Shown: positions 6,031 to 63,363 of the stretch, piece after piece
Layout of the letters: each line of letters starts with the position of its first letter
Position numbering within the stretch: position 1 is the stretch's first letter
Assembly (NCBI GenBank): GCA_965202585.1
Contig: OZ241833.1
Span: forward strand, 13,330,001 to 13,394,000
Reading direction: 5' to 3'
Origin: Thalia democratica
Taxonomy: Eukaryota
Length of the DNA stretch: 64,000 bases
Translations under genes and position numbers: made by a program
The notes under the pieces: generated by a model
The model's database searches: none
The model's input: the letters and a program-made list of their open reading frames with translations, nothing else
What the model was told of the DNA's origin: nothing

Positions 6031-6040
6031 TTAATTTTAG
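6031..6040 (+). promoter_or_regulatory. Candidate 3' splice acceptor about 30 nt upstream of the start codon (5' UTR intron or trans-splice site)
   Basis: ttaattttag|acgtaatctgagcatcaattgacgctgttATG resembles the acceptors used elsewhere in the gene. Confidence 0.3.
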
Positions 6041-6069
6041 ACGTAATCTGAGCATCAATTGACGCTGTT

Positions 6070-6135
6070 ATGGCTACGTCAAAAATCAAAAATTTGATAT
6101 GGTTGCTTCTCATATCAACTGCAGCAATTAATGCA
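6070..6135 (+). other. Predicted signal peptide of the Cys-rich protein
   Basis: MATSKIKNLIWLLLISTAAINA has a basic n-region, a hydrophobic core and a small-residue I-N-A cleavage context. It is followed by the first domain (TRESTMKVRDARKLRSAC...). It is the only signal-like segment in the array. Confidence 0.8.
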
Positions 6136-9100
6136 ACCCGAGAGTCCACAATGAAAGTTAGGGACGCTCGAAAACTGAGATCGGCCTGTCTTGAACAGTG
6201 TCCTATTTCTTGCCCCGAAGACACAATTGATCTTATGGAAGCCAGTTGTCGCTCTTCATGTCGAAAAAGTTAGTATATTTATTATATTTCAAACTTATAG
6301 GCTTGTTTTCAAACTCGTTAGCTTATAACATACTAGTTTATGTTTAAAAAAAAGTGTTATAACTTTATTTTTTACTGGGAAATTATTAAAAAGAGATTAT
6401 AATTTAAGAGGGAGGAATAGATTTTTACGACCAAGACTGTGAAGAATGTGTTCTAAAAACCGTTGGTGGAGCATGTTACGATTGTTTTGGACAATGTTTT
6501 CTTGAAAAGAACTACCCAGACCCAGAAGTGTTAGTAAAAACTTAACAATGTGTCAAGTTTTAAAGAGATTTTGAATGTATTATATTTCATACTTTTTCTT
6601 TATTCATAAAAAACTTGAGTTTTTGGTTTACGTTCAAAGTTTACAAATTTAATTTTTAGACACACTATTTTATTCTTATTTTTAACATGTAATTATAGAA
6701 CTTTTAACATAAAATAGCTACTACATTTTTTATTTATATTTAATTAAATCCAAAAAGTTTCTAAAGCAACTAAATAAGACAAAACCTAATTAAATATACA
6801 ATATATTTTAGCTACGAGCCTTCAGTGGTACCAGTAGATGATGCTCGCAAGCTTAGATCAGAGTGTCTTGAGTTTTGTCCAGTTAGCTGTCCTGCTGATA
6901 CAATAAAAATAATGGAAGGAAATTGTAAAAGATCGTGTCGAAAAGGTTTTGTTTTGTTACAAGCCAAAATCATGACCTAAAGTTTAAAAAGATATAAATT
7001 CGTATAAGAGTTATGGAGTTAAACTTAAACTACTTTAACTATTTTGAAAAATAAACTAGATAAAAAACATACAATTATATTTCCAAATAAACGTTTTAAG
7101 TATTTAAAAGTGTTGTTTTTAGCTTTTCTCACTATTATAAAACATGAAAATTGAATTACAAACATATATCTAGGTTCTGGCACTGCTTTTTACGATGAAG
7201 AATGTGAAAAATGTGTCATTGAAGTTCTTGGCATATCTTGTTGGGACTGCTTCGGTAAATGCTTTAGGGATCGAGGATATATTGATCATAAACTGTAAGT
7301 TTAGAAAAAGCTTGGAAATATTTTAATAAAAAAATAGTAATAATGTTTAACAAATTTGTCAAAAAAAAAAACTTAAACTTTACATTACATTGGTTTACAA
7401 AAACATATGAAAATAAGTTTATATGAAAGTAATATATTTTATGAATAAATTTTAGACTTCCAAATAATGCAGTAGTACAAGTTAAAATGGCAAGGCAAAT
7501 AAGATCAGTTTGTCTAGAAAAATGTCCTAGGGCCTGTCCATGGAACACCATACCTCTTATGAAGGCAAACTGTATTCCTTCATGTAGACAAGGTTGATTA
7601 GCTTAAAATTAATATAAGTTTAAGTACAAATATGTTATAGCATGTATACTCGAATATATTAAATAACGTATAAATGAATTTATTCTTTTAAGAATTTATT
7701 TTACAAACTAAGTTTCGGTCAAAGACCTCGTCAGTGCACTTAACAGAGCACTGATGAGGTCTTTGACAGAAACTTAATTTGTAAAACTAATTCTTGAAAG
7801 AATAAATTCATTATTTCTCTTCCTGTTTGTTTTCTAAAAACCAAAACATATAATAACGTAAATATACATATATATATATATATATACTTTTTACAACAGT
7901 TAACCAACGTACTATATTAAAAAAATGACAGATAATATAAAGCAGGTATTTTCTAATCTTTTTGTAGAAAAAAATTAACTAAAAAACACAAATAAGTTTT
8001 TTGTTTATAGAAAGCGGAACAGCATTTTACAGTCCAGACTGCGAGGCTTGCGTTATCAAAACGTTAGGAGGAGATTGTTATGATTGTTTTGGACAGTGCT
8101 TTTTAGATATGTATTATCCTGATCCAAAAGTGTTAGTTATGATTTACTTATACTTTTTAATTCTAAGGTTTTTTATTGTTTCTTTATAAATTTTTTGCCG
8201 TAATCATCGAGCTTATAAATATTTTTAAGAATTAATTTTAACAAGTTTTTACTTATTAAGCTTAAAAATCTAGAAATCAACATAGTTAGTTTTATTTTTT
8301 TCACCACCGTAGTTCATGACGTCATTAACTAGACTTTCTGGTACATTTTTTTAATTTAAATTATTTTTTAGATATGGTGAGCCAAATTTTCAAAACTTAA
8401 TTAGATATTATTATTTCTACTATAATATTTTTTTCTTTAATAAAACTTTTGAAAACTTTCTACAACCAAAATCTTATTATGTGGACCTTTTGGTACATTT
8501 ATGACTTTTTTTTTTAATTCAACCTATTTTTTATGAATAGCGCTTTGAAACTTTTATAAGAATACGAAATAACAAAAATTGAGTTGTATAAAGTTTGAAC
8601 TGTCAAGGAAACAAGTACCACATAACTATTGCAGTAAAGAAATACGTACAATTCAACAATCGTCATTATATATCTTTTATCATTATGCATGTTTTGAACA
8701 AATTGAAAATTATTCGTATAATAGTACTTTTATTAATCTAAATCAATACAAAATAACAGCTATGAACCATCAGTAAAGTCAGTCCCAGAAGCTAAGAAAC
8801 TTAGACAAGAATGTAAAGAGTTTTGTCCAAAAGATTGTCCGACAAATATGTTTACTTTAATGGAACAAAACTGCAAACGATCTTGCAGACTAGGTTACTT
8901 GAATTGTGAAACTCTTAGTACTGTAGCAGCTAAAAAATATATTAAAGCTTGTCTAAAATTCTATAAAAATAATTTAAAATAGGATCGGGAACGGCATTTT
9001 ACAATGAAAAATGTGAAGAATGTGTTATAACAGTTCTTGGACAACCTTGTTACGACTGTTTCGGCCAATGCTTTAGAAATAAAGGATACTTAGACCATAA

Positions 9101-12100
9101 ATTGTAAGTAACTTAGTTCCAATAAAGGGTAATTACCTTTTTTGTCCTTTTTCTAATAAAAATTTCTAGTAACTTTTTTTAAGTTGTAGGTTTTTATATA
9201 CTCATTAGTTTTGTAAACTAAAAAACTTCAATTACAATAAGATAAATGCTTATATAAAGATGCCAAAAATAACAACAAATTAATTCACTTTTTATGATAA
9301 CTCTGTTATGAAGTTTATATTGTATGGACAATAACTAAATTACAATAAAATAAATATAGGTGAAGTTTCGAGGCAAAGTCAAAATTTTCTAATTACATAC
9401 ATTAGCTTTTAATGAACTTTTTATATTAAGATTTTCAATTTTAGAGCACACATCGAAGGTAAATCTGTAGTTCCAGTAAAACAAGCAAGGCAAATGAGAA
9501 CCGATTGCCTTATTAAATGTCCGAAGTCATGCCCAGAAAATACAGTTGAATTAATGGAAGCTAATTGCAAACCATCATGCAGAAAAGGTACATACACATT
9601 TAGTAATTATTACTTATTTGCAAAAAATAACATATTTTACATTAGAGCACGGAACTGATTTTTATGATCCTGACTGTGAAGCTTGCGTTATCAGAGTTCT
9701 TGGAGGGGATTGTTATGATTGCTTTGGTCAATGTTTTGTAGACATGTACTACCCAGACCCTCACCTGTAAGTTTAAATGATTAAAACAAAAAAACAACAA
9801 AAACAAACATACTTTTACAGCTACGAAGCTTCAGTTGTACCTGTACCTGAAGCTCGTAAACTAAGATCTGAGTGTCTAGAGTTTTGTCCTACTGATTGCC
9901 CGAGCAACACCATCGAGTTAATGGAAGGAAACTGCAAGAGAGATTGCAGAAAAGGATCAGGAACTGCTTTTTATGATGAAGAGTGTGAAGCTTGTGTTCT
10001 GAGAATTCTTGGAAGATCATGCTGGGACTGTTTTGGTCAATGTTTCAGAAACAAAGGATATATTGATCACAAACTGTAAGATGATTTATACTTCACTACA
10101 AATAAGTAATATATAAGTAATACTTTTATTTCTATTAAGATTGATGTCTTTTCATTAATTTCATTAATTTATATTTAAAAGCTCTAATGTTTAACACATT
10201 TACCTTAAACGCTTATATTTAATGAACACAAATAGTGCAAATTTGGGAGGTCCTTCCATCGTTCCAGTTGAACATGCTCGCCCAATGAGATCTGAATGTT
10301 TAAGAAGATGTCCAGATGACTGCCCTACTAATACAATTGAACTTATGGAAGCCAACTGTAAACCTTCGTGTAGAAAAGGTTAATATTTCACTTTATAAAC
10401 TTCAATTATGTTTTTAATTAATAAAAAGATAAAAAAATTTGGTCAAATACTTGAGTAAAAAAGAAATTAATAAGTTTTAAACTAAACACAGCAAATTTTA
10501 TAAAAAAAGATTAAAATTATGATTAAAAGCTTTTTAATTACTTTCATACTGAAATTTTAGAAAATGGCACTGATTTTTATGATCCTGACTGTGAAGCTTG
10601 CGTTATCCGTGTTCTTGGAGGACCTTGTTATGATTGCTTTGGTCAATGTTTCATAGACATGTATTATCCTGACCCTCATCTGTAAGTATTTAAAAACAAA
10701 CTTAATTTTTATAGTTTTAAATCGTATTTTTACAGTCATGAACAATCTGTTGTACCGGTACCTGAAGCTCGTAAACTAAGATCTGAGTGTCTAGAATTTT
10801 GTCCTACTGATTGTCCGAGCAACACCATCGAGTTGATGGAAGGAAACTGCAAGAGAGATTGCAGAAAAGGATCAGGAACTGCTTTCTATGATGAAGAATG
10901 TGAAGCTTGTGTTTTAAGAGTACTAGGAAGATCATGCTGGGACTGTTTTGGTCAATGTTTTAGAAACAAAGGATATATTGATCACAAACTGTAAGTTTAC
11001 GAAATTTTCTAAAGCTGCTAATTTTAACAGAATAGCATTTCAATATATGATTTTAAATTATTTTTTGTATACTTAACGATTTTTTGAGTAATTATAAATA
11101 AATAAATATATATGTATAAACTAGTTACTATAAGAGTTTATTTAAACTAGAAAAAACTTTTAGTGCAAACTTGGGAGGTCCTTCTGTCGTTCCAGTTGAA
11201 CATGCTCGTCCAATGAGGTCTGAATGTATTAGAAGATGTCCAGATAGCTGCCCAAAAAATACAATTGAGCTTATGGAAGCGAACTGCAAACCTTCATGCA
11301 GAAAAGGTAAATAAAATAAGAAGACATAAAAAGTGCAAAACTACATGTATAATAAGTACAAAGTTTTAATTAGGTGTATAAAATCGTCATCTTAAAATAA
11401 CAATTTTAATGCTTTAACGTTCACTAGAAAATTTTTTTAGAGTCCATGTATAATAAATGCATTTACTCAAAAATCATTTTTGTGTTTAAAGTTTTATAAA
11501 TCATACGGTTTGTTTTTAACAAAACACTTGAACATATTGGAATTAAGATATATAAGTTCGCAGGTAAAAAGATATAAACGTAAATTAATTAAACAGAACA
11601 TGGTACTGACTTTTACGATCCTGACTGTGAAGCTTGCGTTATCCGAGTGCTAGGAGGACCTTGTTATGATTGCTTTGGTCAATGTTTCATAGAAATGTAC
11701 TATCCTGACCCCCATCTGTTAGTATACTGTTATTTGCTCTTTTATTTATTAAAATACTTATTTAACTTATTTTAGTCATGAACCTTCTGTTGTACCTGTA
11801 CCTGAAGCTCGTAAACTAAGATCTGAGTGTCTAGAGTTTTGCCCTACTGACTGCCCGAGCAACACCATCGAGTTGATGGAAGGAAATTGCAAGAGAGATT
11901 GCAGAAAAGGTTCAGGAACTGCTTTCTATGATGAAGAGTGTGAAGCTTGTGTTCTTAGAGTACTTGGAAGATCATGCTGGGACTGTTTTGGTCAATGTTT
12001 CAGAAATAAAGGATATATCGATCACAAACTGTAAGTAAAATAAAGATTCTGTTTAGAAAGTTTTTGGTAAACTTTCCTGTTGAAATAGATCAAGACTAAT

Positions 12101-15100
12101 TCCTTAATTTACAACTAAATACATTTTAAACATTGAAAAATATCTATAAGATTTAACAAAATAATATTGGTCTAATTATATTCTTTTATAAACTTATAGT
12201 GAAAACTTGGGAGGTCCTTCAGTTGTTCCAGTCGAACATGCTCGTCCAATGAGATCTGAATGTTTAAGAAGATGTCCAGATGACTGCCCAACAAACACAA
12301 TTGAGCTGATGGAAGCCAACTGCAAGCCTTCATGCAGAAAAGGTACCAAAACTTGATTTATAAATAAAAAAGTTACAAAAAACTAAAACCATTTGAGATC
12401 AATTTTTGCATTGAGCTTTATGTAACTTACAGCTGTTAGAACATTTAAAATGTTTTAGTGTAAATATTTAAAAGAATTTTGATATAAATGTTTTCTAAAG
12501 TACCTTATATCTAAAACCAATATACATTATTATATAGAACATGGAACTGACTTTTATGACCCTGACTGTGAAGCTTGCGTTATTCGAGTTCTTGGAGGAC
12601 CATGCTATGATTGCTTTGGTCAATGTTTCATAGACATGTACTATCCTGACCCCCATCTGTTAGTATACTAATATTGTTCTTTTATTTATTTAAATACTTA
12701 TTTATCTTTATTTTAGTCATGAACCATCTGTTGTACCTGTACCTGAAGCTCGTAAACTAAGATCTGAGTGTCTAGAGTTTTGTCCTACTGATTGCCCAAG
12801 CAACACCATTGAGTTGATGGAAGGAAACTGTAAGAGAGATTGCAGAAAAGGATCAGGAACTGCTTTCTACGATGAAGAATGTGAAGCTTGTGTTCTAAGA
12901 GTACTCGGAAGATCATGCTGGGACTGTTTCGGTCAATGTTTTAGAAACAAAGGATATATCGATCACAAACTGTAAGCTATTATGTGTATCTTAAGCTTGT
13001 AACTAGGTAACTTTCTTTAATATAAGCGTTTTACTATTTTTAGTTAAAAAAAAAGTTAAAAAAACATTTAAATTTTTATAATAAAAGGACTTAATTGATT
13101 ATTTAGTGAAAACTTGGGAGGTCCTTCTGTTGTTCCAGTTGAACATGCTCGCCCTATGAGATCTGAATGTCTAAGAAGATGTCCAAATGACTGCCCGACT
13201 AACACAATTGAACTTATGGAAGCCAACTGCAAACCTTCGTGTAGAAAAGGTAAAAAAAATGCTTTGGTTGTAAAAAACACAAAGTAAAATTACAAGATCC
13301 TTACTAATATCAACAAACGAACATATTAAGTCATAACTAATCCTGAAAACTTTTATTTATTTTTAAAATTGATATTTACAAAAAAGTAAAAACATTTAAA
13401 TTACTATCATTATTTCTATAGAACATGGGACTGACTTTTACGATCCCGACTGTGAAGCTTGCGTTATTCGAGTTCTTGGAGGACCATGTTATGATTGCTT
13501 TGGTCAATGTTTCATAGACATGTACTATCCTGACCCCCATCTGTTAGTTTTTAATAACAAACTTTTTTTTAACAATACTGAATTCTTATTTTTCAGTCAT
13601 GAACCATCAGTTGTACCTGTTGAAGAAGCTCGTAAACTAAGATCTGAATGCTTAGAGTTTTGTCCTACTGATTGTCCGAGCAACACCATCAATTTAATGG
13701 AAGGAAACTGCAAGAGAGATTGTAGAAAAGGATCAGGAACTGCTTTCTATGATGAAGAATGTGAAGCTTGCGTTCTAAGAGTACTCGGAAGATCGTGCTG
13801 GGACTGTTTTGGCCAATGTTTCAGAAACAAAGGATATATCGATCACAAACTGTGAATATTTTGAAGATGTTTATTATAAATTTTTTAAGTTGTTTTAAAA
13901 AGTTCTTATAATAAAGAGTAATTTTTAGATAGTTTGAAATTACACTAATCAATGAATATTTCACAAAGATAGTAAATCTCAGCTTAAAACTGATCTTTCT
14001 ATATAATTATTTAAGAGCAAGTTTGGGAGGTCCTTCAGTAGTACCTGTTGAACATGCTCGTCCAATGAGATCTGAATGTCTAAGAAGATGTCCAAGTGAC
14101 TGCCCAACAAACACAATTGAACTTATGGAAGCCAATTGCAAGCCATCATGCAGAAAAGGTGTTTATTGTTTATATTTTGTGAATGATTACATATAAACAC
14201 TAGAAAAGTTTACTTGTGTTATTTATCTTACTACATTTTGTCAGCTTATAACCTTTAAATTTTTATAAAAAACCGTTTAAACGAGTGATCATTTGTTCAA
14301 TTACAGTAACTATTAAAGTAATCACTGCACTAGTAAACAAAAACATAGTATTGTGGAACACTTTCAGAAGTAGTTGTAGCGTTTGAGTTTCAAATACTTA
14401 ATTTGATAGTATAAATATTTCTTAATTGTTTCATAATTCTTTTTAAACTTTAAGTTTTATAAAGATGTGCAATACTTTTTATGTTTGAAGTAAATGAGTT
14501 ATTTTTTAAGGTGATTAGTAAAGAAGTTTCTAAAATTTTAGAACAAATTTTTACAGCATTTCTTTCATTTTTAATTAGACTATTCTTTTAGCCATAATCA
14601 AAGTAAATAATAACTATATGTAAACAATGTAAAGCATTTTTGAATGAAATATATTATTTATTCGAAGTAAAAATATGCAACTTTGTATTAATATATATAT
14701 TATTTCATAACATTTTTTTTCTATTTAGCATTTTATGACCAACTTGAAATTATTTAATCGCAAATAGTTTTATTGACATTAACTTTTTTTTATAGAAAAG
14801 GTCATAGTTATTTAAATAAGATTACAACAAACGGTTTTGCTTACTGAAAATAAAAACTTAAAGTTTAGGAGAAGACTTTAAAAATGTTTGAGTGTATTTT
14901 TATATATAGATCAATACAAGTATTAGTGATATGTTAAATTTTTGTCATAACAACACTAATAATACACGAGTTGATTAATCATTTTTTCTATCAATTGATC
15001 ATTGTATACTTAAAAAACATCATTTAGAGCATGGAACTGACTTCTACGATCCTGATTGCGAATCTTGTGTTATTCAAGTTTTGGGAAAACCGTGTTATGA

Positions 15101-18100
15101 TTGTTTCGGACAGTGTTTTGTAGATATGTACTACTACGATCCTCGATTGTAAGTATCATTCACTTTAAAACTAAGTAGAATTTATTCATACTTTATATAA
15201 GCTGTAAAAATTAGTAATTATACAATAATAAAATATTTTAGACAAGACGTTAAAAGGTATCCAAGTGGTGTGCGACTCGATAACCGAAAGGTTTTTTCGT
15301 GCACTAGGTCAAAAGACCAAACATTTTGAGCGCTTTCATTTGTCGTTCAATAAGCAATATATATGTAGAGCTAACATTAACGAGGAAGGGAAGTAAATTT
15401 AGATAATAAAGTATTGAAAGTTTTACTTCACTTAAAAGTTTTAAAAATCTGTGACAAAAATGATTTTATCTTCATATATACTTATTGAAGAAGTGACGCT
15501 ACTTTTACCACGTATATACATAAACTAATGTACCTGACAAGTGTATATTGATTTATGTAGTTTTCCTAAGAACATAGGTCTTTAAAAACTGTTATTAATA
15601 AGTTTTTTTTTATGAGTCAACTTATTATTTATTTACAGGATCCATATTTTTTTACCTATTGAAAAACTTGTCAAAAAATATTTAAATTTTTTTTTAACTA
15701 AAACAGAATTTAAACAGTTTGAAACTTAATTTAAGATAAATAATAACTAAAGCTGAAATTTTTGAAGATATTTAATCTACAATGCAAAAAAAACCTTGTG
15801 TTGATATTGATGTCTTTAACCTGCCACATTTAGAAGATATTTAAAATGCAAAATTTTCTTAAATATTTATAAAATATTAATTTTTCAGTATTTTTCAGTT
15901 AATAAAAATTAAAATTGTAGAAATATTTGTGTTCATATAATATTTTAATACCTCTAGTTAAATTTTTAAATTATATCTACAACCATCATAGCTTTTTAAT
16001 TATTCTAAGAATCTATAAGTATTTGTCAAAAAACAAGCTCTAAAATTTAGAATTGAGCAATCAGTTGTACCAGTTGAAGATGCGCGTAAACTAAGATCCG
16101 AGTGTCTAGAGTTTTGTCCTACTGACTGTCCGAGAAACACAATCGAGTTGATGGAAGGAAACTGCAAACAAGATTGTAGAAAAGCATCAGGAACTTCTTT
16201 TTACAATAAGGATTGTGAAGCTTGTGTTCTGAAAGTTCTCGGAAGATCTTGTTGGGATTGTTTTGGCCAATGTTTTAGAAACAAAGGGTATTACGACCAT
16301 AAACTGTGAGTTTTAACAAATGCTTGTTTTCAACGCTTTTTGCTTCTAAAACGGTTTTCAATCGAATCTAAAGTCTTTTTATTAATTAAATTTAGAAAAT
16401 TCTAATGCATAAATACATATTATCGTAGAATGAAAGAATTTTAATTTACATCTAAAGATATATTAATTAAAAAATAGCAAAAAGTTAGGTGTTCCTTGTG
16501 TCTTTATCTATCAAAATCTTGAAAATATTTTTCGATATACATAGTATTAATGTTTTTTGAAAATTATATAAAAGCTTAGCCATATTTCCATTGTAGTGAA
16601 AACTTGGGAGGTCCTTCAGTTGTTCCTGTCGAACATGCTCGCCCAATGAGATCTGAATGTCTTAGAAGATGTCCAGGTGACTGTCCAACAAACACAATTG
16701 AACTTATGGAAGCCAACTGCAAGCCATCATGCAGAAAAGGTAATAAATACATTCAAGTAAAATTTTCTTACAATGATTGACACATATAATGCCAACAAAT
16801 ATCATTTACTAAAATGTCTATAAAAAAGACTTCAAAAAAATTTCTAAAAGTTAAAATTGACTTGAGAGTTTAAGTAAAACGTATTTTTAGCAGTTATAAA
16901 AACTTATTGAAAAGTAAAAAAAATTATTTAATAGAACACGGTACTGACTTTTATGATCCTGACTGTGAAGCTTGCGTTATTCGAGTTCTTGGAGGACCAT
17001 GTTATGATTGCTTTGGTCAATGTTTCATAGACATGTACTATCCTGACCCCCATCTGTTAGTTTTTTATAACAAACTTTTTTTTAACAATACTGAATTCTT
17101 ATTTTTCAGTCATGAACCATCAGTTGTACCTGTTGAAGAAGCTCGTAAACTAAGATCTGAATGCTTAGAGTTTTGTCCTACTGATTGTCCGAGCAACACC
17201 ATCAATTTAATGGAAGGAAACTGCAAGAGAGATTGCAGAAAAGGATCAGGAACTGCTTTCTATGATGAAGAATGTGAAGCTTGTGTTTTAAGAGTACTCG
17301 GAAGATCATGCTGGGACTGTTTTGGTCAATGTTTTAGAAACAAAGGATATATCGATCACAAGCTGTAAGACTATTGTTTAGTTTTTATATGTAATAAGTT
17401 GTTCAAAAATATTTTAGTTTAAAAGTCAAAAATTTCTTCATTTCAAAAATTAAAAAAATTAATGAAATATTTAAACTGCTTTTTGATATTCTGACAAGGT
17501 TAGTATTCAACTAACCGAAACAGCTAACATTGAAAAATGACAAGTTTACTTTAGTTTAATTTTTTCGAAGTATATAAAAGTTAAATTAGCATTATAATTG
17601 CTGAATAAACTTTAGCGAAAGCTTGGGAGGTCCTTCTGTCGTTCCAGTTGAACATGCTCGCCCAATGAGATCTGAATGTCTAAGAAGGTGTCCAAGTGAC
17701 TGTCCTACAAACACAATTGAACTAATGGAAGCCAACTGCAAACCATCATGTAGAAAAGGTAATCAAGAGATATGCAATAGTTATCAAGAACAAAACTAAA
17801 AACTATAAGAATTATGCTAGTATAAATAAGTTAACAAATTTTACTTGAAGTTATCTTTAAGAGTATTCAGTCGATTTAGAATTTAAGTTTCTAAAAAGAT
17901 CTTTGCTTAAATAAACAACATCAACAATTCTACAGAACATGGCACTGACTTTTACGATCCTGACTGTGAAGCTTGCGTTATCCGAGTTCTTGGAGGACCA
18001 TGTTATGATTGCTTTGGTCAATGTTTCATAGACATGTACTATCCTGACCCCCATCTGTTAGTTTTGAATAAAAACTTAATTTTTAACTTTTCTCACATGT

Positions 18101-33100: not shown

Positions 33101-36100
33101 GAAATGTATTTCGCTCTAGTTTATATTTTAATAATCTATCACTTTCAACCAAATTTTTACAGACAACATGTAACCAAACATATTATGTAGTTATTTTGAT
33201 TTTAATGTAAAATTTCTACTAATTGTAAAAAAAACTTAAACTTCATAATACCTGCATAAGCTCTTTATTAATATTATAAAAATGTGTTAAGTAATTTTTG
33301 TAAAAACAAGGTTATAATTTTAGAAATGATGAATCAGTTGTACCAGTTGAAGATGCGCGTAAATTAAGATCTGAGTGTCTAGAGTTTTGTCCTACTGATT
33401 GTCCAAGCAACACCATCGAGTTGATGGAAGGAAACTGCAAGAAAGATTGTAGAAAAGCATCAGGAACTGCTTTCTATGATGAAGAATGTGAAGCTTGTGT
33501 TCTAAGAATACTCGGAAGATCATGCTGGGACTGTTTTGGTCAATGTTTTAGAAACAAAGGATACATAGATCCAAAACTGTAAGCTATTGATTTGTTCATG
33601 ACAGTGTTTTCATTTAAACATGTTTATAATAAATTTCCATAAACTATAAACTTATTTATAAGTTTTTACTAAACTTTGTTTCAAAAAGTATTATACAAAT
33701 GAGTTTTCGTTATAAATGCTGATAAACCTTCAGCGCAAACTTGGGAGGTCCTTCTGTTGTTCCAGTCAAACATGCTCGTCCAATGAGATCTGAATGTCTA
33801 AGAAGATGTCCAAGTGACTGTCCAACTAACACAATTGAGCTTATGGAAGCCAACTGCAAACCTTCCTGCAGAAAAGGTAACAAGCAGATACGTATTAACA
33901 TATTTAAAACAAATAACATTTTTATTATATGTTTTGGTTTTAAGAAAACAAATAAAGAGATCTCAACTACTGGAGGAGAAATAATGCATTCATTCTTTTA
34001 AGAATTTATTTTACAAACTAAGTTTAGGTCAAAGACCTCGTCAGTGCTTTAATAAATCTAAAAAGATATGCGACAGTCATGGAAAATAGCATTTAAACTA
34101 TTAAATTAAAGTAAAAACAAATTTTTAATCAAAAATTTTACATATAAAACTAAACAAATTCAATTTTAATATCAAGATTGAGTTTAAGGTAAATTTTATA
34201 TTTTACTTAAGTTTTAAAATCAATATAACAACAATAATAATTTTGTTTTATAAATATGTTTGTTTTTTGCGTTAATTACTATTTTACATTGATTTATTTT
34301 GTTGATTGGTTTTTACAGCAATCTAATTACTTAGGCAGATTTCTAAAGTTATTGTTTTTAGTTTAAAAGCTATTGTTCTATTTCAAATTTCTGCAGTAAG
34401 TTTTTGAAGAGTTACAGTGAAAATATATTAAAATTTTTGTGGTAAAATATTGATTGTTCTTTATATAGGTAAAAAATAAAAACAATAATATTAATAAAAG
34501 CTATATGTAGGTTTCTTTTTTCTTTTAGTTAATTTTCAAAGTAAACATTGTTTAAGCAAAAATGTTGTTAATAAAGTGAGCTTAAAATTGGAGATGAATT
34601 TTTAACGTAGCTTATTTTAATTTTGACGTAACTATTGAAAACTTAAACAATCTTGTGCTTGTAATAGCTATGAAAATTTGAAATCCCGCCCGAATGCTTT
34701 AAAAGTAAACTTATAGTTAAAACAAACTTTATATATCTTTTTAGCTTTATTTAAGCACTGACGAGGTCTTTGACCGAAACTTAGTAATTAAAATAAATCC
34801 TTTAATAAATAAATCCATAACATATTTATGTTCAACAAAAAAGTAATAGGTCAAATAAAAACTCTATCAAAATATAGAATAAATATAAAAGCTATTTTTT
34901 TATAAGTTTGAAAATGTTTTGAGTTTTGCTTTAAATTAATTAATTTACTTATAATATTTAATTTAACTAGCTTAATTTTTTAATAGAACACGGTACTGAC
35001 TTTTACGATCCTGACTGTGAAGCTTGCGTTATCCGAGTTCTTGGAGGACCATGTTATGATTGCTTTGGTCAATGTTTCATAGACATGTACTATCCTGACC
35101 CCCATCTGTAAGTTTTGAATAGAAAACTTAATTTTCAATATTTCTTACTTGTACTATTACAGTCATGAACCATCTGTTGTACCGGTACCTGAAGCTCGTA
35201 AGCTCAGATCTGAGTGTCTAGAGTTTTGTCCAACTGACTGTCCAAGAAACACAATCGAGTTGATGGAAGGAAACTGCAAGAGAGATTGCAGAAAAGGAAC
35301 AGGGACTGCTTTTTATGATGAAGAATGTGAAGCTTGTGTTCTGAGAGTACTCGGAAGATCATGTTGGGACTGCTTTGGTCAATGTTTCAGAAACAAAGGA
35401 TATATCGATCACAAACTGTAAGCTAATGAACTATCAATCATACGACAATGTTTTATAAAAATAAATCAATTTAAAACAATTGTAACTTTTTTTTGAGATG
35501 AAGGGTATGAATTATTTACTTAGGTATACTTGAAGCCATATACTTTTCATTTAATATACATCATATGCTCTTATTAATTTTTTTCTATACGAAAGTGAAA
35601 ACTTGGGAGGTCCATCTGTCGTTCCAGTTGAACATGCTCGCCCAATGAGAACTGAATGCCTTAGAAGATGTCCAGGTGACTGTCCAACTAACACAATTGA
35701 ACTTATGGAAGCCAATTGTAAACCTTCATGCAGAAAAGGTAACTAAATTGTTCAAAATCTAGTTTAGTAGAGTTATGCATATTAAAATTTTTTTTTAAGT
35801 TCTGATCGATAGTGCTCGACAAATTAAACTGGAGCTAAATATTTATTTGATTATATAAAAAACAATAGGTTTATACGACCGTTTCGTATATGAGATATAA
35901 CCTCATATAGTCAACAGTAATACAATCTTTACAAATGTTTCAAAATGTATAAGTTCTTAAACTAAGAAGGTCAGCGTATTTTTTCAAATTTGACTTACTC
36001 TACAAAAAAACCTTCATTATTACTACGTCATATTAATTATAAAAATTCTAAATATCTGTTATATACTGTTAATAAACTTTAGCTTTACTGATGACTATAT

Positions 36101-39100
36101 GAGGTTATATATCTAATATACGAAATGGTCGTATAACCTATTGTTTCTTATAAAATTAAATAAATAAGCTGTATTTATGTATATATATATATAGAAAATA
36201 AGATGATTATTTATACTCAATCACTTTCTACAGAGCCAACTTGAAGGGCTTTTTAATAGTTTATTAAGAAAATACGATTTTAAAAATTCCAGAAAATATA
36301 TTTTATAAAGACAAAAAAGACTGTCTCTAATCTTCAGCTGGTTCAATTTAAAATAAAAAGCACTTTGGTAAACAGAGATGCAAAAGTTATACAAAAAAAC
36401 TATATGACGTTAGATTTTAATATTGTACATTACAAATATTCGGTGCAAAATTCATCTCCCAAATTAAAATAAAATCAATGTTTTTGCTCCTTAGGCCGCA
36501 TACATACTTTGAAAGCTCAGTCTCATTTTCGTATTCACCACCTTTAAAAGATTTTTATGGTTTGCATACCCGAATCTGAACTGAGTCGAGCATAAGCCGA
36601 TGTAGAACATATTTTCGAGTTCAGAGTTAACTGTTGCCTTGTGAAGAATGTTTTTCGAACGGCAGTTGCCCCTTTTCAAATTATAAATGCAGCCACTAGC
36701 GCAATTACACTGATTTTTGATTAAATTACTTCTGTTTAAAATCCTCTGATAGTGAAACTTAATTAATCTCTCTAAATTCGCCATACATGAATAACTAATT
36801 CACATATTATGTTTATTAAACATATTTTATAATGGGTTATTTTTGTTAAAATATTTTTTACTAGACTTATAAATTCTCTGCCGATATTTGCTTTATCTGT
36901 TGTTTATGTACATATGTGAACTATCTCTGAAAAAAACAATTAAGAATAAAATCAAGCCTCTAATTATTAAACGATGATTTAGTTCGAATTGATTGTACAC
37001 TTTTTGCTTTCTTTAGAACATGGTACTGACTTTTATGACCCTGACTGTGAAGCTTGTGTTATCCGAGTTCTTGGAGGATCTTGTTATGATTGCTTTGGTC
37101 AATGTTTCATAGACATGTACTATCCTGACCCACATCTGTGAGTTTTTTATTATAAACTTTGTTTTTATATTTTCTTATTCCTATTTTTTTAGTCATGAAC
37201 CATCAGTGGTACCCGTACCTGAAGCTCGTAAACTAAGATCTGAATGCTTAGAGTTTTGTCCAACTGATTGCCCAAGCAACACTATAGAGTTGATGGAAGG
37301 TAACTGCAAGAGAGATTGCAGAAAAGGATCAGGAACTGCTTTCTATGATGAAGAATGTGAAGCTTGTGTTCTGAGAATACTTGGAAGATCTTGCTGGGAC
37401 TGTTTCGGTCAATGTTTCAGAAACAAAGGATATATCGATCACAAACTGTAAGATGATTTATACCTTACTACCTATTAGTATTATAAAAGTGTTCTAAAAC
37501 TTTTTTTATATACTTCTGTCAAATTAATTAAACGTTTTAAAGACTTAATTATAATCTCTATGAATATATAATTTTTTAATTAGTGAGAATTTGGGAGGTC
37601 CTTCTGTTGTTCCAGTCGAACATGCTCGTCCAATGAGATCTGAATGTCTTAGAAGATGTCCAGATGACTGTCCAACTAACACAATTGAACTTATGGAAGC
37701 CAACTGCAAACCATCATGTAGGAAAGGTAATAAAAATTAGGTGTAAATAAATTTTAGTATTTCAAACTGCTCTATGTCAAAATTAAGCTTTAGTCTTTTT
37801 GTGATAGAAGCTTGGAAGAACTTAACGACTAATAAAATAATTTTAAACTGAAATTAAAAGTTTTTAGAATGTTTAAACTACGATTTATTACAGAACATGG
37901 TACTGATTTTTACGATCCTGACTGTGAAGCTTGTGTTATCCGAGTTCTTGGAGGACCATGTTATGATTGCTTTGGTCAATGTTTCATAGACATGTACTAT
38001 CCTGACCCCCATCTGTTAGTTTTTGATAAAATATTATTTTTCAATATTTCTTACTTGCTTGTATTTTTACAGTCATGAACCATCTGTTGTACCTGTTCCT
38101 GAAGCTCGTAAACTAAGATCTGAATGTCTAGAATTTTGTCCTACTGATTGCCCAAGCAACACCATCGAGTTGATGGAAGGAAACTGCAAGAGAGATTGCA
38201 GAAAAGGATCAGGAACTGCTTTCTATGATGAAGAATGTGAAGCTTGTGTTTTAAGAGTACTAGGAAGATCATGTTGGGACTGTTTCGGTCAATGTTTCAG
38301 AAACAAAGGATATATCGATCACAAACTGTTAGATTTTTTAGAATTTACAACAATTAAAAAATTTTAAAGTGTTTTTAAGTTTTTTCAAGTAGTTTTTTTT
38401 TTAACTGTCATTTACTTCAAACAAAACTCTAAAACGTTTTTTTACGTTAATATAATATTAAAGAAAATGAGGTATTTACTTTCATTAAACAATAGTGCTA
38501 ACTTGGGAGGTCCTTCAGTTGTTCCAGTTGAACACGCTCGTCCAATGAGATCTGAATGTCTAAGAAGATGTCCAAGTGACTGCCCATCAAACACAATTGA
38601 ACTTATGGAAGCCAACTGCAAACCCTCATGTAGAAAAGGTAAGAAACTTTAGTTATAAAAGTATATATCAGTATTAATTTATAAACTAAACAATAAAAGT
38701 TTTTATCTTTGTTCATTAAAAAATTTCGTAATTACTTAAGGACTAACACATCTATTTTTATATTGGAAATAAAAAATTTTTCAATTACTTTTTTTTGATG
38801 TAATATAATCGGTTTTTTATAGAACATGGTACTGATTTTTATGACCCTGACTGTGAAGCTTGTGTTATCCGAGTTCTTGGAGGACCATGTTATGATTGCT
38901 TTGGTCAATGTTTCATAGACATGTACTATCCTGACCCCCATCTGTTAGTATTTTAATGTTAACTTTGTACATGAACAACTGCTTATTTAATTTTATTTTA
39001 GTTATGAACCATCTGTTGTACCTGTACCTGAAGCTCGTAAGCTCAGATCTGAGTGTCTAGAGTTTTGTCCTACTGACTGCCCAAGCAACACCATCGAGTT

Positions 39101-42100
39101 AATGGAAGGAAACTGCAAGAGAGATTGCAGAAAAGGATCAGGAACTGCTTTTTATGATGAAGAATGTGAAGCTTGTGTACTAAGAATACTCGGAAGATCT
39201 TGCTGGGACTGTTTTGGTCAATGCTTTAGAAACAAAGGATATATGGATCACAAACTGTGAGTAACAAATAGATTCTTTATTAACAATTTTAATAACGATT
39301 TTTACACATTACTTATTTAAAAAAAAAAATTTCACCCTTTATCGCTATTTCAAGTTGGATCTTTTTTAGTTTTATTTATTTTTATTCATTTAAATAAAAT
39401 TAAGAAAACTATAAATATTTATTCACTTTTTCTGATCATACTTAGAAATTATTCTTTTAGATTGTCCGGTTTCTCATAAACTTTTTTTTGGAACCTTTAG
39501 TTTCATAAATACTATGTTCAAAGAATAAAATAGAAATTTTTTTAGTGAAAACTTAGGAGGTCCTTCTGTAGTTCCAGTTGAACACGCTCGTCCGATGAGA
39601 TCTGAATGTTTAAGAAGATGTCCAGATGACTGTCCAACAAACACAATTGAATTAATGGAAGCCAACTGCAAGCCTGCATGTAGAAAAGGTAATAATTTTT
39701 GTTTACTATATAAAGTACGATATATTCACTTGATTAAACATGTTTTTTGTTTTGTGAATATCTTCTATATCTTCCCGTTTTAATTAAAACAATATTTTTT
39801 GATAATCGTTTTACAACTCTAATATAGAACATGGTACTGACTTTTACGATCCTGACTGTGAAGCTTGTGTTATTCGAGTTCTTGGTGGATCATGTTATGA
39901 TTGCTTTGGTCAATGTTTCATAGATATGTACTATCCTGACCCTCACCTGTTAGTAATTTATTACTTACTTTCGCGTATTAAAATTTTTTGTTTTTGAACT
40001 TTGTAGTTTATAACCATTGGTTGTACCTGTAAATGAAGCTCGTACATTAAGTTCTGAGTAGATATCTATCATTTTTTACACTGATATGAAATTTAATAGT
40101 TTGTATCAGGGACGTAGCTAGCTCAAAAAAGCTACGAATCTGCAAAAAGTTTAAACATCTGTAATGACGCGTGATAACGTCCTAGCAAGAACAGAGCAAT
40201 TTAAACAACCCCGAATGTTATCTAATTTAATATAGTAGTATACAGTAATTTCAATACTTTAAAAACTGTATACAAGGCAATTTATGTGTTGCCACTTGTG
40301 TGAAACTATAAAACTTTCATTGAAAATAAGTATAAAAATTGACAACTTAACTCAGAAAATTTATACTGTTAGTGCCAAACTAAGTATAAAAGATACTAAA
40401 ATCTAAGAAAGCAGGGCGTTTATCAACTGAAGAATAGAAACAAAAACTTTTTTTTTTCGCACAAAAGTATACCAAGCTACGTGCCTGGTTTGTAGCATCT
40501 TTTAAGATAAAACACAAGTTTAAATTGAATTTTTTAAACCTGTAATGAACCAAGAAAAAAAAAACTTGCTTTGATAATGATGCTTAAAAATTACCTTAAA
40601 ACTTAATTAGTTGCTTTTTTTTATTATATTAACAAAAATATAATATTATTATTTGATAGCTTTATTTATGAATATAGATACACAAACAATATTGTATTAT
40701 TGAATTAAAATTTAATTTCAATACTTTTATTTGAAATTAAAATTAAAGTTGTACACTTTAGACTTTTTAAGTAAACTAAAAATCTGTTAAGTATTTGTCA
40801 TAAATAAGTTTTGAAAATTAGAAATGAGCAATATTTTTAATTTTAAAGTCATGAGCCATCTGTTGTCCCTGTTGAAGATGCGCGTAAATTAAGATCTGAA
40901 TGTCTAGAGTTTTGTCCTACTGACTGTCCAAGAAACACAATCGAGTTAATGGAAGGAAACTGCAAGAGAGATTGCAGAAAAGGATCAGGAACTGCATTTT
41001 ACGATGAAGAATGTGAAGCTTGTGTTATTAAAACTCTTGGACAACAGTGTTATGATTGTTTTGGACTCTGCTTCCGTGACAGAGGATATATGGACTACAA
41101 ACTGTTAGTTAAGATAAAAAATCAGACAAGTAAATAAGATCAAAATTCATAACTATTAAAGAAATTTCAGGGACAGTCTTTATTTTTTGTTCCTTTAAGA
41201 TTAATAAGGATATGATATTTTGTAAAACAATACACTTATAATTATAAGAAGGTATATTACTTTGAAAAAGTAATTCAAGTTTGTTTGAAACAGTGCACAC
41301 TTGGAAGGAACATCTGTGGTACCTGTCAAACAAGCACGTCCAATGAGAACAGAGTGTCTCAAGAGATGTCCTAAAAAATGTCCGAAAAATACAATCGCTT
41401 TAATGGAAGCGAATTGCAAACCTTCATGCAGAAAAGGTTTTGATTATTAAAATCAATTTTTATATCTTAGTTTTTTTTTTGTTTTGTAATTGTTGATACA
41501 TACTTTAAACTTTCCTATGAATTATAGAGGGCGGTACTGATTTTTACGACCAAGACTGTGAAGAGTGTGTGATTAAAGTTTTAGGAGGAGATTGTTATGA
41601 CTGTTTTGGACAATGTTTCTACGATATGTACTACCCGGATCCTAAAGTGTAAGTCAACTAGCTTTTCTTCGTAGAATATTAAAGTGCTTTACTGTTTATG
41701 AAAACTTAAAACATTTATTTTTAGGTATGAACCTTCAGTAAAACCTGTTAGAAAAGCAAGACGACTAAGATCTCAATGCTTAAGACGTTGTCCTGATGAA
41801 TGTCCGACAAATACTATAAAACTTATGGAAAAAAATTGCAAAAGATCTTGCAGAAAAGGTTTACTAATTTTACAAGCTACCAACTTAAATATTTTAATTA
41901 AACTGAGTTTTTATTAATTTTTGAATAATGAATCGAATTTATTAAATACTAAAAACAACTTTTTTAATTTGAAGTGTGAAACATTTTGTTATCATTTTTA
42001 GAAATTTCAATTTATCCTGTTAATGATTTACGTTTATTTATAGGTTCTGGTGTTGCTTTTTATGACGAAGAATGCGAAGAGTGTGTTATCAAGACATTAG

Positions 42101-42337
42101 GATACCCTTGCTACGACTGCTTTGGACGGTGTTTCAGAAAAAAAAGATATTTTGACCACAAGCTGTTAGTTTTTCTTATTTTATTTAGTAAATTAGATAA
42201 GTTGAAGGTTTCAGCACAGAACAATAAAATTACTTGATGTGTACTTTTATAAAATAAAATTTTTAAACAACTTTTGAACAACCGTACTAATTTTAACTTA
42301 AATTTTCAGGCGTCTTACAGATGAAGAGAAAAACTAG
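6070..42337 (+). CDS. Giant multi-exon gene for a predicted secreted Cys-rich tandem-domain protein (about 5,042 aa, 58 ten-Cys domains); family not recognised
   Basis: The exons join in one frame with GT..AG boundaries. N-terminal exons: 6070-6268, 6409-6529, 6812-6945, 7174-7294, 7456-7592, 8011-8131, 8760-8893, 8983-9103. Units of exon A(143 nt)/B(121)/C(255): U1 9445-9587/9646-9766/9821-10075; U2 10236-10378/10561-10681/10736-10990; U3 11164-11306/11597-11717/11776-12030; U4 12200-12342/12538-12658/12717-12971; U5 13107-13249/13422-13542/13597-13851; U6 14016-14158/15028-15148/16051-16305; U7 16597-16739/16935-17055/17110-17364; U8 17616-17758/17936-18056/18111-18365; U9 18618-18760/18938-19058/19113-19367; U10 20072-20214/20389-20509/20565-20819; U11 21001-21143/22166-22286/22345-22599; U12 22778-22920/23127-23247/23304-23558; U13 23738-23880/24088-24208/24265-24519; U14 24700-24842/25050-25170/25227-25481; U15 25662-25804/26011-26131/26188-26442; U16 26621-26763/26961-27081/27139-27393; U17 27562-27704/27896-28016/28072-28326; U18 28506-28648/28867-28987/29042-29296; U19 29433-29575/29778-29898/29954-30208; U20 30390-30532/30740-30860/30919-31173; U21 31347-31489/32306-32426/33324-33578; U22 33734-33876/34987-35107/35163-35417; U23 35596-35738/37017-37137/37193-37447; U24 37584-37726/37894-38014/38073-38327; U25 38496-38638/38823-38943/39002-39256; U26 39546-39688/39828-39948/40849-41103; U27 41294-41436/41528-41648/41725-41858+42044-42164. 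Last exon 42310-42337 (RLTDEEKN-TAG). Sum 15,129 nt = 5,043 codons. Every A, B and fused C exon has its exact modular length with no indels. No TM segment or GPI tail is seen. Not every A/B exon was translated codon by codon. Confidence 0.88.
7673..7812. repeat. Intronic hairpin of about 65-bp arms (7673-7737 / 7748-7812, 10-nt spacer), each arm carrying a hammerhead motif
   Basis: aatgaatttattcttttaagaatttattttacaaactaagtttcggtcaaagacctcgtcagtgc pairs with gcactgatgaggtctttgacagaaacttaatttgtaaaactaattcttgaaagaataaattcatt, with a few mismatches. Confidence 0.9.
7702..7738 (-). ncRNA. Minimal type I hammerhead ribozyme with intact core (family 1)
   Basis: The minus strand reads UGCA CUGACGA GGUC UUU GACC GAA ACUUAGU U UGUA. 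All core nucleotides are present, stem II is GGUC/GACC, stem III is the self-complementary ACUUAGU, the cleavage triplet is GUU, and stem I has 4 bp. Confidence 0.7.
7868..7886. repeat. (AT)n microsatellite
   Basis: Uninterrupted alternating AT run within an intron. Confidence 0.8.
15241..15360 (+). repeat. Copy of a dispersed repeat of about 130 bp (also 47524-47648 and 63364-63550)
   Basis: Shared core gacaagacgttaaaaggtatccaagtggtgtgcgactcgataaccgaaagg...ggtc...gaccaa...ttttgagcg. Confidence 0.7.
17365..19367 (+). repeat. Recent direct duplication of units U8/U9 including introns (period about 1,002 bp)
   Basis: The A exons at 17616 and 18618 are 1,002 bp apart, and all three introns are near-identical between the copies. 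Confidence 0.85.
19441..19908. repeat. Diverged intronic direct repeat (19441-19603 and 19766-19908) with degenerate hammerhead-like cores on the minus strand
   Basis: The two copies align by eye. The minus strand of 19545-19570 and 19851-19876 reads CUGAAAA GUC..GAC GAAAC and CUGAAAA GUCC..GGAC GAAAC. Confidence 0.6.
21189..21720 (+). mobile_element. Decayed RTE-type non-LTR retrotransposon fragment (region C-terminal to RT) in the U11 A-B intron
   Basis: Translation: INSCIGKA*CTFARLTLRVLIKQKLNIYTKAKVYCSSL*NTLLYGSKTRTLFS*QKKKFNTFPLRCLCSISRIAWQKKIINEKVLRRTSL...IQRKLRWICHVLRM...KRDRGH..KDV...KWRSTV. This follows the RTE motifs RIGKA, TLLYGSETW, LRCLRRIL, W...ITNEEVL and RLRWLGHV.RM, and contains several stops and a frameshift. 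Confidence 0.85.
22600..25804 (+). repeat. Recent sub-array U12-U15 (period 960-962 bp) with near-identical introns
   Basis: A exons lie at 22778, 23738, 24700 and 25662 (spacings 960, 962, 962). The introns differ by scattered substitutions; U12 is the most diverged. Confidence 0.85.
33992..34812. mobile_element. Element bounded by family-1 hammerhead-bearing inverted repeats (33992-34057 / 34746-34812) with about 690 bp of AT-rich interior
   Basis: The left arm matches 7682-7737 except for one change (GAAA to UAAA on the minus strand). The right arm is gcactgacgaggtctttgaccgaaacttagt. Confidence 0.75.
34755..34790 (+). ncRNA. Hammerhead motif with intact catalytic core on the host-gene sense strand (family 1); stem I poorly paired
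   Basis: GCA CUGACGA GGUC UUU GACC GAA ACUUAGU A AUUA. The core and stems II and III are intact and the triplet is GUA, but the proximal stem I pairs are mismatched. Confidence 0.6.
35841..36790 (-). mobile_element. Penelope-like retroelement relic: GIY-YIG endonuclease fragment (about 36790-36440) plus inverted hammerhead-bearing repeats (35841-35920 / 36085-36166)
   Basis: The minus-strand translation NQCNCASGCIYNLKRGNCRSKNILHKATVNSELENMFYIGLCSTQFRFGYANHK, then after a frameshift FKGGEYENETELSKYVCGLRSKNIDFILIW, fits the PLE CNC..C linker and the YIG, RY.NH and ETELSK.IW.LK pattern. The adjacent inverted repeats carry hammerhead cores. Confidence 0.8.
36085..36136 (+). ncRNA. Minimal type I hammerhead motif (family 2) on the host-gene sense strand
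   Basis: UUA CUGAUGA C UAUAUGAG GUUAUAUAU CUAAUAUA C GAA AUGGUCGU A UAA. The core is intact, with C.C in place of G10.1-C11.1, a self-complementary stem III and a 3-bp stem I. The partner arm (35871-35920, minus) reads CUGUUGA. Confidence 0.55.
40007..40061 (+). pseudogene. Dead truncated C-type pseudo-exon
   Basis: After the normal acceptor spacing, tag|ttat-aaccattggttgtacctgtaaatgaagctcgtacattaagttctgagtag matches the start of a C exon, with a 1-nt deletion and TAG at the first Cys codon. Homology ends there. Confidence 0.8.
40107..40487. mobile_element. hAT-type MITE (381 bp) in the U26 B-C intron
   Basis: TIRs CAGGGACGTAGCTAG and (reverse complement) CAGGCACGTAGCTTG match 13/15. The flanks gtttgtat/gtttgtag form an 8-bp TSD with one mismatch. 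Confidence 0.75.
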
Positions 42338-63140: not shown

Positions 63141-63363
63141 AACAAGAATAGTCTTCTGTAGTATAAAGAAGACATTTTTTGTAATTGTAGTTCATTTTAT
63201 ATTTTTAAACAGTTTCTAAGGTTTTTTTTTTGTTTTTTGTTATAGTGAAAGTGTAAACCTGAGTGGAATTTAAATTTAAAAAGTTTTTGCAATACTTTGC
63301 ACAGGTAGTCCTAAACTGGAAATAATTTTACTAACAATTAGTTTATTGAACGAAATAAAAAAC

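Follow-up and report, generated by a model that had tools for sequence, protein, structure and literature searches.

We analysed a 64,000-nt stretch of Thalia democratica DNA (GCA_965202585.1, contig OZ241833.1, 13,330,001-13,394,000, forward strand; hereafter the window, whose own positions are used below) and found in it one gene, at 6070-42337 on the + strand, that encodes 58 copies of a ten-cysteine domain without a significant match to any described family or fold in the libraries searched. A six-frame regular-expression scan of the 64 kb detected 58 N-terminal half-motifs (C-x3-C-x3-C-x11-C-x3-C) and 58 C-terminal half-motifs (C-x2-C-x8-C-x2-C-x3-C), which follow each other in strict alternation, all on the + strand, from 6187 to 42132, and are absent from the - strand and from the rest of the window. 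The gene model was built by joining phase-consistent AG/GT sites at fixed offsets from every motif. It contains 91 exons, and all 90 introns (54-1,278 nt) are GT..AG. The coding sequence of 15,129 nt is translated without an internal stop into 5,042 aa, of which exactly 580 are Cys, and the complete ten-Cys pattern occurs 58 times in the spliced protein with exact spacing.

Three classes of exon make up the gene. A exons hold five Cys (phase 2 in, phase 1 out), B exons hold the other five (phase 1 in, phase 2 out), and C exons hold a whole domain of ten Cys (phase 2 in, phase 2 out). Relative to the motif, the acceptor and donor lie at -61 (-55 or -52 in end domains) and +7 in A exons, at -29 and +32 in B exons, and at -52 and +32 in C exons, while the last B exon is spliced from the donor at 42164/42165 to a mini-exon at 42310-42337. 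A sequence-only reading of this stretch had claimed a single gene running from one signal peptide to one terminal exon (RLTDEEKN, stop), with 58 domains, about 580 Cys and about 5,000 aa, and a spacing of C-x3-C-x3-C-x11-C-x3-C-x12-C-x2-C-x8-C-x2-C-x3-C in every domain that it had translated. These claims hold: the 91-exon frame is open, with no stop in its A or B exons, RNA covers its 3' end, and 58 of 58 domains are intact with that exact spacing. The features of the gene are as follows.

6070..42337, + strand: coding span of the whole gene (90/90 GT..AG introns phase-consistent, frame open, 580 Cys)
6070..6268, + strand: exon 1, with the start codon, the signal peptide (MATSKIKNLIWLLLISTAAINA..., judged by eye) and the N-terminal half of domain 1
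6409..9766, + strand: N-terminal block of diverged domains 1-5, each split into A (5 Cys) and B (5 Cys) by a phase-1 intron
9821..41103, + strand: core array, domains 6 to 56, with 26 type II C exons and a type I A/B pair after each of the first 25
17616..18056, + strand: representative type I domain (A 17616-17758, intron, B 17936-18056)
18111..18365, + strand: representative type II exon, whose codons 18112-18363 were the query for searches and for the structure model
41294..42164, + strand: diverged C-terminal domains 57 and 58 (A 41294-41436, B 41528-41648, A 41725-41858, B 42044-42164)
42310..42337, + strand: terminal mini-exon, with the last base of a Leu codon, then RLTDEEKN and the stop
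42338..42664, + strand: 3' untranslated region, with aataaa near 42646 and poly(A) after 42664

The exons, all on the + strand, are:

Domains 1-5: A 6070-6268, B 6409-6529; A 6812-6945, B 7174-7294; A 7456-7592, B 8011-8131; A 8760-8893, B 8983-9103; A 9445-9587, B 9646-9766
Core: C 9821-10075, A 10236-10378, B 10561-10681; C 10736-10990, A 11164-11306, B 11597-11717; C 11776-12030, A 12200-12342, B 12538-12658
Core: C 12717-12971, A 13107-13249, B 13422-13542; C 13597-13851, A 14016-14158, B 15028-15148; C 16051-16305, A 16597-16739, B 16935-17055
Core: C 17110-17364, A 17616-17758, B 17936-18056; C 18111-18365, A 18618-18760, B 18938-19058; C 19113-19367, A 20072-20214, B 20389-20509
Core: C 20565-20819, A 21001-21143, B 22166-22286; C 22345-22599, A 22778-22920, B 23127-23247; C 23304-23558, A 23738-23880, B 24088-24208
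Core: C 24265-24519, A 24700-24842, B 25050-25170; C 25227-25481, A 25662-25804, B 26011-26131; C 26188-26442, A 26621-26763, B 26961-27081
Core: C 27139-27393, A 27562-27704, B 27896-28016; C 28072-28326, A 28506-28648, B 28867-28987; C 29042-29296, A 29433-29575, B 29778-29898
Core: C 29954-30208, A 30390-30532, B 30740-30860; C 30919-31173, A 31347-31489, B 32306-32426; C 33324-33578, A 33734-33876, B 34987-35107
Core: C 35163-35417, A 35596-35738, B 37017-37137; C 37193-37447, A 37584-37726, B 37894-38014; C 38073-38327, A 38496-38638, B 38823-38943
Core: C 39002-39256, A 39546-39688, B 39828-39948; C 40849-41103 (26th C)
End: A 41294-41436, B 41528-41648, A 41725-41858, B 42044-42164; terminal 42310-42337

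The 3' end of the model was compared with RNA by placing contigs of four metatranscriptome runs (two studies) on 37000-42750. Nine predicted junctions are confirmed, as are the terminal mini-exon and the poly(A) tail. Contigs 727-1,030 nt long give exact joins at 39256>39546, 39688>39828, 39948>40849, 41103>41294, 41436>41528, 41648>41725, 41858>42044 and 42164>42310, where joins reported as 'cut +2' are the identical junction written two positions earlier; the ninth, of the B>C kind, is predicted at 38943>39002 and is read in the contigs as 38943>39004 with an intervening TC. The four junctions of domains 57 and 58 (41294..42164) were seen in contigs of 3-4 runs and 42164>42310 in three runs. 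RNA covers the exons and has zero depth in the long introns (39304-39495 and 40264-40839). Because one contig (X11 record 4) extends to 42664 and then runs into A14, the message is polyadenylated about 327 nt past the stop. In index searches, the locus was also matched by DNA runs of two organisms and by several metatranscriptomes of marine plankton. A Tara Oceans transcript fragment (P0044, 595 aa) reads through diverged end-type domains into core units without a break and includes a type I domain that is 100% identical to that of the window gene; it shows the same exon-joined reading in a transcript of the window gene or of a sister gene. Some contigs join an A donor to a B acceptor one or two units downstream (37724>38821, 37724>39826 and 38636>39826), in frame and with GT..AG. 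These joins may be real exon skipping or de Bruijn-graph artefacts across near-identical exons.

At the 5' end, translation starts at the ATG at 6070, with an in-frame stop just upstream at 6049-6051. A polypyrimidine-AG acceptor (ttttag, ending at 6040; window 6034-6069) lies 29 nt 5' of the start codon and upstream of that stop, and by its position it would possibly suit spliced-leader trans-splicing or an upstream non-coding exon. The N-terminus is signal-like when judged by eye: MATSKIKN followed by LIWLLLISTAAI, with a basic n-region and a 12-residue hydrophobic core. No second hydrophobic or transmembrane segment was found in the 5,042-aa protein, and it has only 2 N-x-S/T sequons. The mature protein is computed at about 568 kDa with an isoelectric point of about 5.3; its composition is 11.5% Cys, 16% Asp+Glu and 12% Arg+Lys, and all Cys lie within domains.

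The ten-cysteine domain and its relatives

The 10-Cys domain is a new domain family within a known kind of architecture. Pfam-A searches with the window domains and two multi-domain relatives, P0004 and P0025 (E up to 10), returned no family near its gathering threshold; the only entries listed, DUF7202 (E 0.15) and DUF6970 (E 0.076), are far below the cut-offs. PDB sequence and profile searches gave no significant match, an ESM Atlas feature search found nothing, and the literature on the endostyle, the salp net and tunicate Cys-rich repeat proteins yielded no account of the domain; the repeats of a 'CysRRep' preprint are unrelated to it.

An AlphaFold2 model of a single domain, from a 48-row alignment of window domains and relatives, is predicted with confidence (predicted local distance difference test, pLDDT, 89.1; predicted template modelling score, pTM, 0.75) as four helices with a small beta bridge. 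Its elements are a strand at 5-7, helix 8-21, a kinked helix 30-42, a strand at 47-49 and helices 53-63 and 65-77, and the beta bridge ties the 'SVVPV' linker to its own domain. Cys18 and Cys22 are placed at the end of helix 1, Cys26 in a loop, Cys38 and Cys42 in helix 2, Cys55 and Cys58 in helix 3, and Cys67, Cys70 and Cys74 in helix 4. With five Cys in each half, the two halves must be joined by at least one disulfide, and a natural guess from the model is two stapled helical hairpins plus one bridge. The sequence-only reading had called the C-x3-C spacing typical of disulfide-stapled helical hairpins and had matched the full pattern to no family. The helical model agrees with the first point, with a disulfide pairing that we infer; of the searches it had proposed, Pfam and a single-domain AlphaFold model with Foldseek were run and bear out the second, as they returned no described family or fold.

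Five fold searches with this model gave generic helical matches and no structural neighbour:

PDB Foldseek: best match E 1.1
AFDB clusters: best match E 1.8
AFDB Swiss-Prot: best match E 1.8
ESM Atlas fold search: unnamed helical proteins of bacteria or viruses, template modelling (TM) score at most 0.59
VIA-align wide (48,161 chains): best Z 4.7, under the tool's noise level for helical models

Known cysteine-rich folds were also considered one by one. The N-terminal half, CX3C(X3C)...CX3C on two predicted antiparallel helices, is reminiscent of small Tim proteins and alpha-hairpinins, and the weak fold matches include small Tims, C5a and a CFEM protein, all non-significant (E >1, TM <=0.41, root-mean-square deviation (rmsd) often >10 A); such bundles differ from the window domain in Cys number, spacing and cellular compartment. 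For small Tim or twin-CX3C proteins in particular, Foldseek gave Tim9/10/13 at E >3 and rmsd >12 A, and the window protein has a signal peptide. The C-x2-C-x8-C-x2-C-x3-C of the C-terminal half presumably resembles PSI spacing, but the PSI family has no Pfam match here, no plexin, semaphorin, integrin or Met chain is among the fold matches, and the model is helical and not a PSI knot. Saposin and anaphylatoxin find no support either. Vanabins have no Pfam match (E up to 10) and no PDB sequence match, and are absent from the top PDB Foldseek, VIA-align and AFDB Swiss-Prot matches.

An exhaustive phmmer search of one domain against 1.84 billion representative proteins returned 20 matches. About 18 are real; they are all unnamed and derive from marine data (metagenome, metatranscriptome or Logan assemblies), in line with the lineage restriction that the sequence-only reading had proposed. 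Two (P0015 and P0022) were dropped as unrelated: they match through low complexity or repeats, one being a chitin-binding-like repeat and the other a TPR-like protein. Word-indexed searches with the domain, P0004 and the 48-row profile added no named protein, and neither these nor the representative-protein search found relatives in named tunicate protein sets. P0004, of 877 aa, is encoded by a full transcript (L001) and carries a signal peptide and 10 domains that have diverged from one another; P0025 is a 924-aa fragment with 10.5 domains; and members of the P0007 group (105-118 aa) consist of a signal peptide and one domain. Signal peptides are found in relatives as well (P0004, P0007, P0014 and P0019). 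Complete domains of P0004, P0025 and the P0007 group all have the identical ten-Cys spacing, and besides Cys the invariant residues are Ala11, Pro23, Pro27, Met34, Asn37, Tyr51, Gly64, Phe71 and Gly72, which the model places in the core or in turns. The C-terminus is RDEL in P0025 and KTEL in P0004, both preceded by RV and resembling retrieval signals of the endoplasmic reticulum (ER). The tail of the window protein, RLTDEEKN, resembles the onset of the P0025 tail (RLTGE...) and ends before the ER-retrieval-like motif. The P0007 group lies on a poly(A)-tailed contig (L002); 1.4 kb further upstream, this contig (L002:1-3188) has an unrelated 431-aa open reading frame in the same orientation that gave no Pfam match. 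The contig may represent a transcript that is unspliced or polycistronic, or else a chimeric assembly.

Organisation, age and selection of the array

Two types of domain alternate in the core. The type I domain has 85 aa, is always split into A and B and ends in ...DMYYPDPHL, and the type II domain has 88 aa, is encoded in the core by a single exon and ends in ...GYIDHKLENL; together they form a 173-aa two-domain super-repeat (core exon lengths: C 255 nt, A 143 nt, B 121 nt). Along the protein, five split diverged domains are followed by 26 type II domains alternating with type I and then by two split diverged domains. The alternation of type II-like and type I-like domains is already present in domains 1-5. 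Because the type II-like domains 2, 4 and 58 are still split by the intron between A and B, and a genomic fragment of a relative (P0006) has an intron at the same place, after CRK, this intron appears to be ancestral. Its loss in type II would then have preceded the amplification of the 173-aa pair.

The inter-domain linkers are short and Pro-rich (HKLENLGGPS and PDPHLHEPS), and no dibasic or other processing site was found in the linkers proper. An R-x-x-R motif, RKLR in type II and RPMR in type I, ends two residues ahead of Cys1 in 56/57 repeats. A three-domain model (P0044:310-570, near-identical to the core) shows the same fold three times with linker pLDDT <55 and pTM 0.45; the low pTM and poorly modelled linkers are weak evidence for beads on a string without fixed packing rather than a rigid rod.

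The core exons are 83-91% identical in DNA, with mostly synonymous differences, and the protein copies are >95% alike. Nonsynonymous (dN) and synonymous (dS) divergence by the Nei-Gojobori method is as follows.

C exons: dN 0.031, dS 0.49, dN/dS 0.06
A exons: dN 0.056, dS 0.58, dN/dS 0.10
B exons: dN 0.116, dS 0.64, dN/dS 0.18

The introns of most units have practically no 12-mers in common with any other unit, and recent-looking copies, judged by intron 12-mers, are limited to units 7/8, 12/13/14, 18/23 and 10/19. Because dS is about 0.5 and the introns are mostly unalignable, the array is old, and because it is anchored by unique intron sequence, an assembly artefact is unlikely. The dN/dS ratios of 0.06-0.18 indicate that each bead is individually kept by purifying selection. 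Purifying selection on every copy, together with diverged introns, implies that both the number and the sequence of the beads matter. The array offers a clean example of an old tandem repeat kept near-identical in protein by selection and not by recent homogenisation.

Two units 30 domains apart (14159-16050, domains 15/16, and 31490-33323, domains 45/46) carry the same variant residues (CESCVIQVLGKPC..., ...MYYYDPRL and then ..SVVPVED). Each pair is flanked by two introns of about 0.8-0.9 kb, and these introns share almost no 12-mers; the pattern reflects either an old higher-order duplication or parallel change.

Possible roles of the secreted chain

The reading that we favour, with about even confidence, is that the gene makes an intact extracellular chain of disulfide-locked beads that acts as a structural or matrix protein. 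One secreted, non-glycosylated protein of about 568 kDa would consist, behind a signal peptide, of 58 four-helix domains that fold independently and presumably contain five internal disulfides each, which lock them as very stable beads; the beads would be joined by short Pro-rich linkers, with the two types alternating as 26 near-identical 173-aa two-bead units between diverged ends. Such a protein could be a component of the gelatinous tunic, a secreted filter or a coat of this planktonic tunicate, to name examples. Surfaces are conserved within the array, and conservation across the family is confined to the core, which suggests that the periodic bead surfaces would self-associate or align along a repeating partner. 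We infer that the chain is secreted uncut, and likewise its material role and its tissue. Only tentatively do we extend this to a new fold family restricted to a few planktonic (probably thaliacean-type) lineages, in which the 58-bead chain would be a major builder of a secreted biomaterial and its alternating beads a periodic surface by which it self-assembles or aligns with a repeating partner, cellulose fibrils for instance.

The nearest described design is that of CREMP-type tandem disulfide-module proteins, to which there is no homology. Avian CREMP, a fibre protein, consists of ordered disulfide modules in tandem that are connected by flexible linkers, and about 10% of its residues are Cys (10.1101/2025.09.16.676614). 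The window protein is likewise a very long secreted chain of small disulfide-rich modules, with 11.5% Cys and low-confidence linkers, and tandem ordered modules and flexible linkers are found in its sequence and models. However, the CREMP module has 4 Cys in a loop and beta-hairpin, whereas the domain here has 10 Cys and four helices in about 85 aa, and profile and fold searches found no sequence or fold relation between them. Within tunicates, the nearest systems are the oikosin house proteins and mucin CysD repeats, which are not homologous either. These are tunicate-secreted proteins of houses and mucus, some with tandem 10-Cys domains and many of them lineage-restricted (PMC3390340, PMC3195396), and the window protein, with its predicted secretion, tandem 10-Cys domains and restricted range, would be similar in these respects. 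The mucin CysD or oikosin 1 Cys domain (about 100-110 aa, 10 Cys, WxxW, mucin-like context) gave no Pfam match, and the window domain differs from it in spanning about 60 aa from first to last Cys, with no WxxW, no Ser/Thr-rich stretches and almost no sequons.

The regular R-x-x-R motif raises the main alternative, a polyprotein, in which a furin-type cut after RKLR or RPMR would free about 29 copies each of two 85-88-aa peptides in a 1:1 ratio, to act as defence, toxin, inhibitor or signalling peptides. Its presence in 56/57 inter-motif segments counts in favour of this; the sameness of the copies and their strict 1:1 alternation would suit dose amplification of two products, and the single-domain secreted relatives of the P0007 family (105-118 aa) indicate that one domain can function alone. 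Nematode polyprotein antigens and other multi-copy precursors have a similar layout of tandem near-identical helix-rich units with regular RxxR, but there the cleavage sites sit between units, while the motif here lies inside helix 1 of the modelled domain, and there is no homology. RxxR occupies residues 12-15 in the middle of helix 1 (8-21), in a block with pLDDT 92, adjoining the invariant Ala11 and behind the beta bridge of the same domain, so that a cut would nick a folded domain and not part the beads. The motif is moreover not conserved in the 10-domain relative P0004, the type I P2 residue is Met and not the preferred basic residue, and the true linkers (HKLENLGGPS and PDPHLHEPS) have no basic pair. 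We regard a polyprotein as unlikely. The sequence-only reading had left the choice open between a scaffold and a peptide-effector polyprotein; the scaffold fits better, because RxxR lies inside a confidently modelled helix and the linkers have no processing site.

A multivalent soluble binder, for instance an agglutinin, an opsonin-like factor or a tandem protease-inhibitor array, would use the same surface on each of the 58 beads to bind a microbial, particle or enzyme target with very high avidity. Many identical, stable disulfide-rich modules on flexible linkers in a secreted protein would serve this purpose, the conservation of surfaces within the array and of only core residues across the family is compatible with it, and a profile search matched the TIL-type inhibitor BSTI weakly and without significance (E 0.22). 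We hold it to be a rather doubtful reading, as Pfam, PDB and fold searches found no significant similarity to any lectin, inhibitor or recognition domain, and the helical model has no exposed segment resembling a reactive loop. Tunicates are known for Cys-rich metal-binding proteins, and a secretory-pathway resident thiol or metal handler (a redox buffer or metal store in the spirit of the vanabins) could draw on the C-x2-C-x8-C-x2-C arrangement of the C-terminal half and the RDEL and KTEL ends of shorter relatives, but it is very improbable given that the giant ends in DEEKN, which is not KDEL-like, that an even and invariant 10 Cys per domain with a signal peptide points to disulfides, and that vanabins are absent from the Pfam and fold matches.

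Several points weigh against the structural chain that we favour. Its material role is read from sequence and predicted structure, and the protein has no spare Cys and no module recognised as serving multimerisation or cross-linking, such as VWD or CTCK. The R-x-x-R ahead of Cys1 in 56/57 repeats could mark processing, and the RDEL and KTEL ends of the shorter relatives hint at ER residence of some members. On the RNA side, the comparison covers the 3' 5 kb of the gene, and in view of the cross-unit A-B joins the length of the mature mRNA is provisional.

What the gene contributes is a domain that is modelled with confidence, presumably has five disulfides and is without a neighbour in the sequence and structure libraries; it belongs to a transcribed half-megadalton protein of abundant, poorly studied ocean grazers. 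A material protein would give a molecular handle on how pelagic tunicates build their transparent tunic or filter, and a new stable module for protein design; a polyprotein would be an unusually large precursor delivering two peptides in a fixed ratio.

Other features of the window

The window is AT-rich, with a GC content of 27-34% within the gene versus 22-25% outside. Tandem Repeats Finder reported no repeat in the window, as the unit, at about 1 kb, is longer than the maximum period of the program and the introns are diverged. Rfam cmscan at gathering thresholds and a tRNA scan gave no match in the whole window. Eleven introns measure 418-1,278 nt versus the usual 54-290 nt (for example 7593-8010, 33877-34986 and 35739-37016), and they probably carry insertions. 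At 61400-63200 (+ strand), open reading frame fragments resemble a decayed hAT-type transposase when judged by eye, with a DUF4413-like part at 61650-61976 and a part like the hAT C-terminal dimerisation region at 62961-63137.

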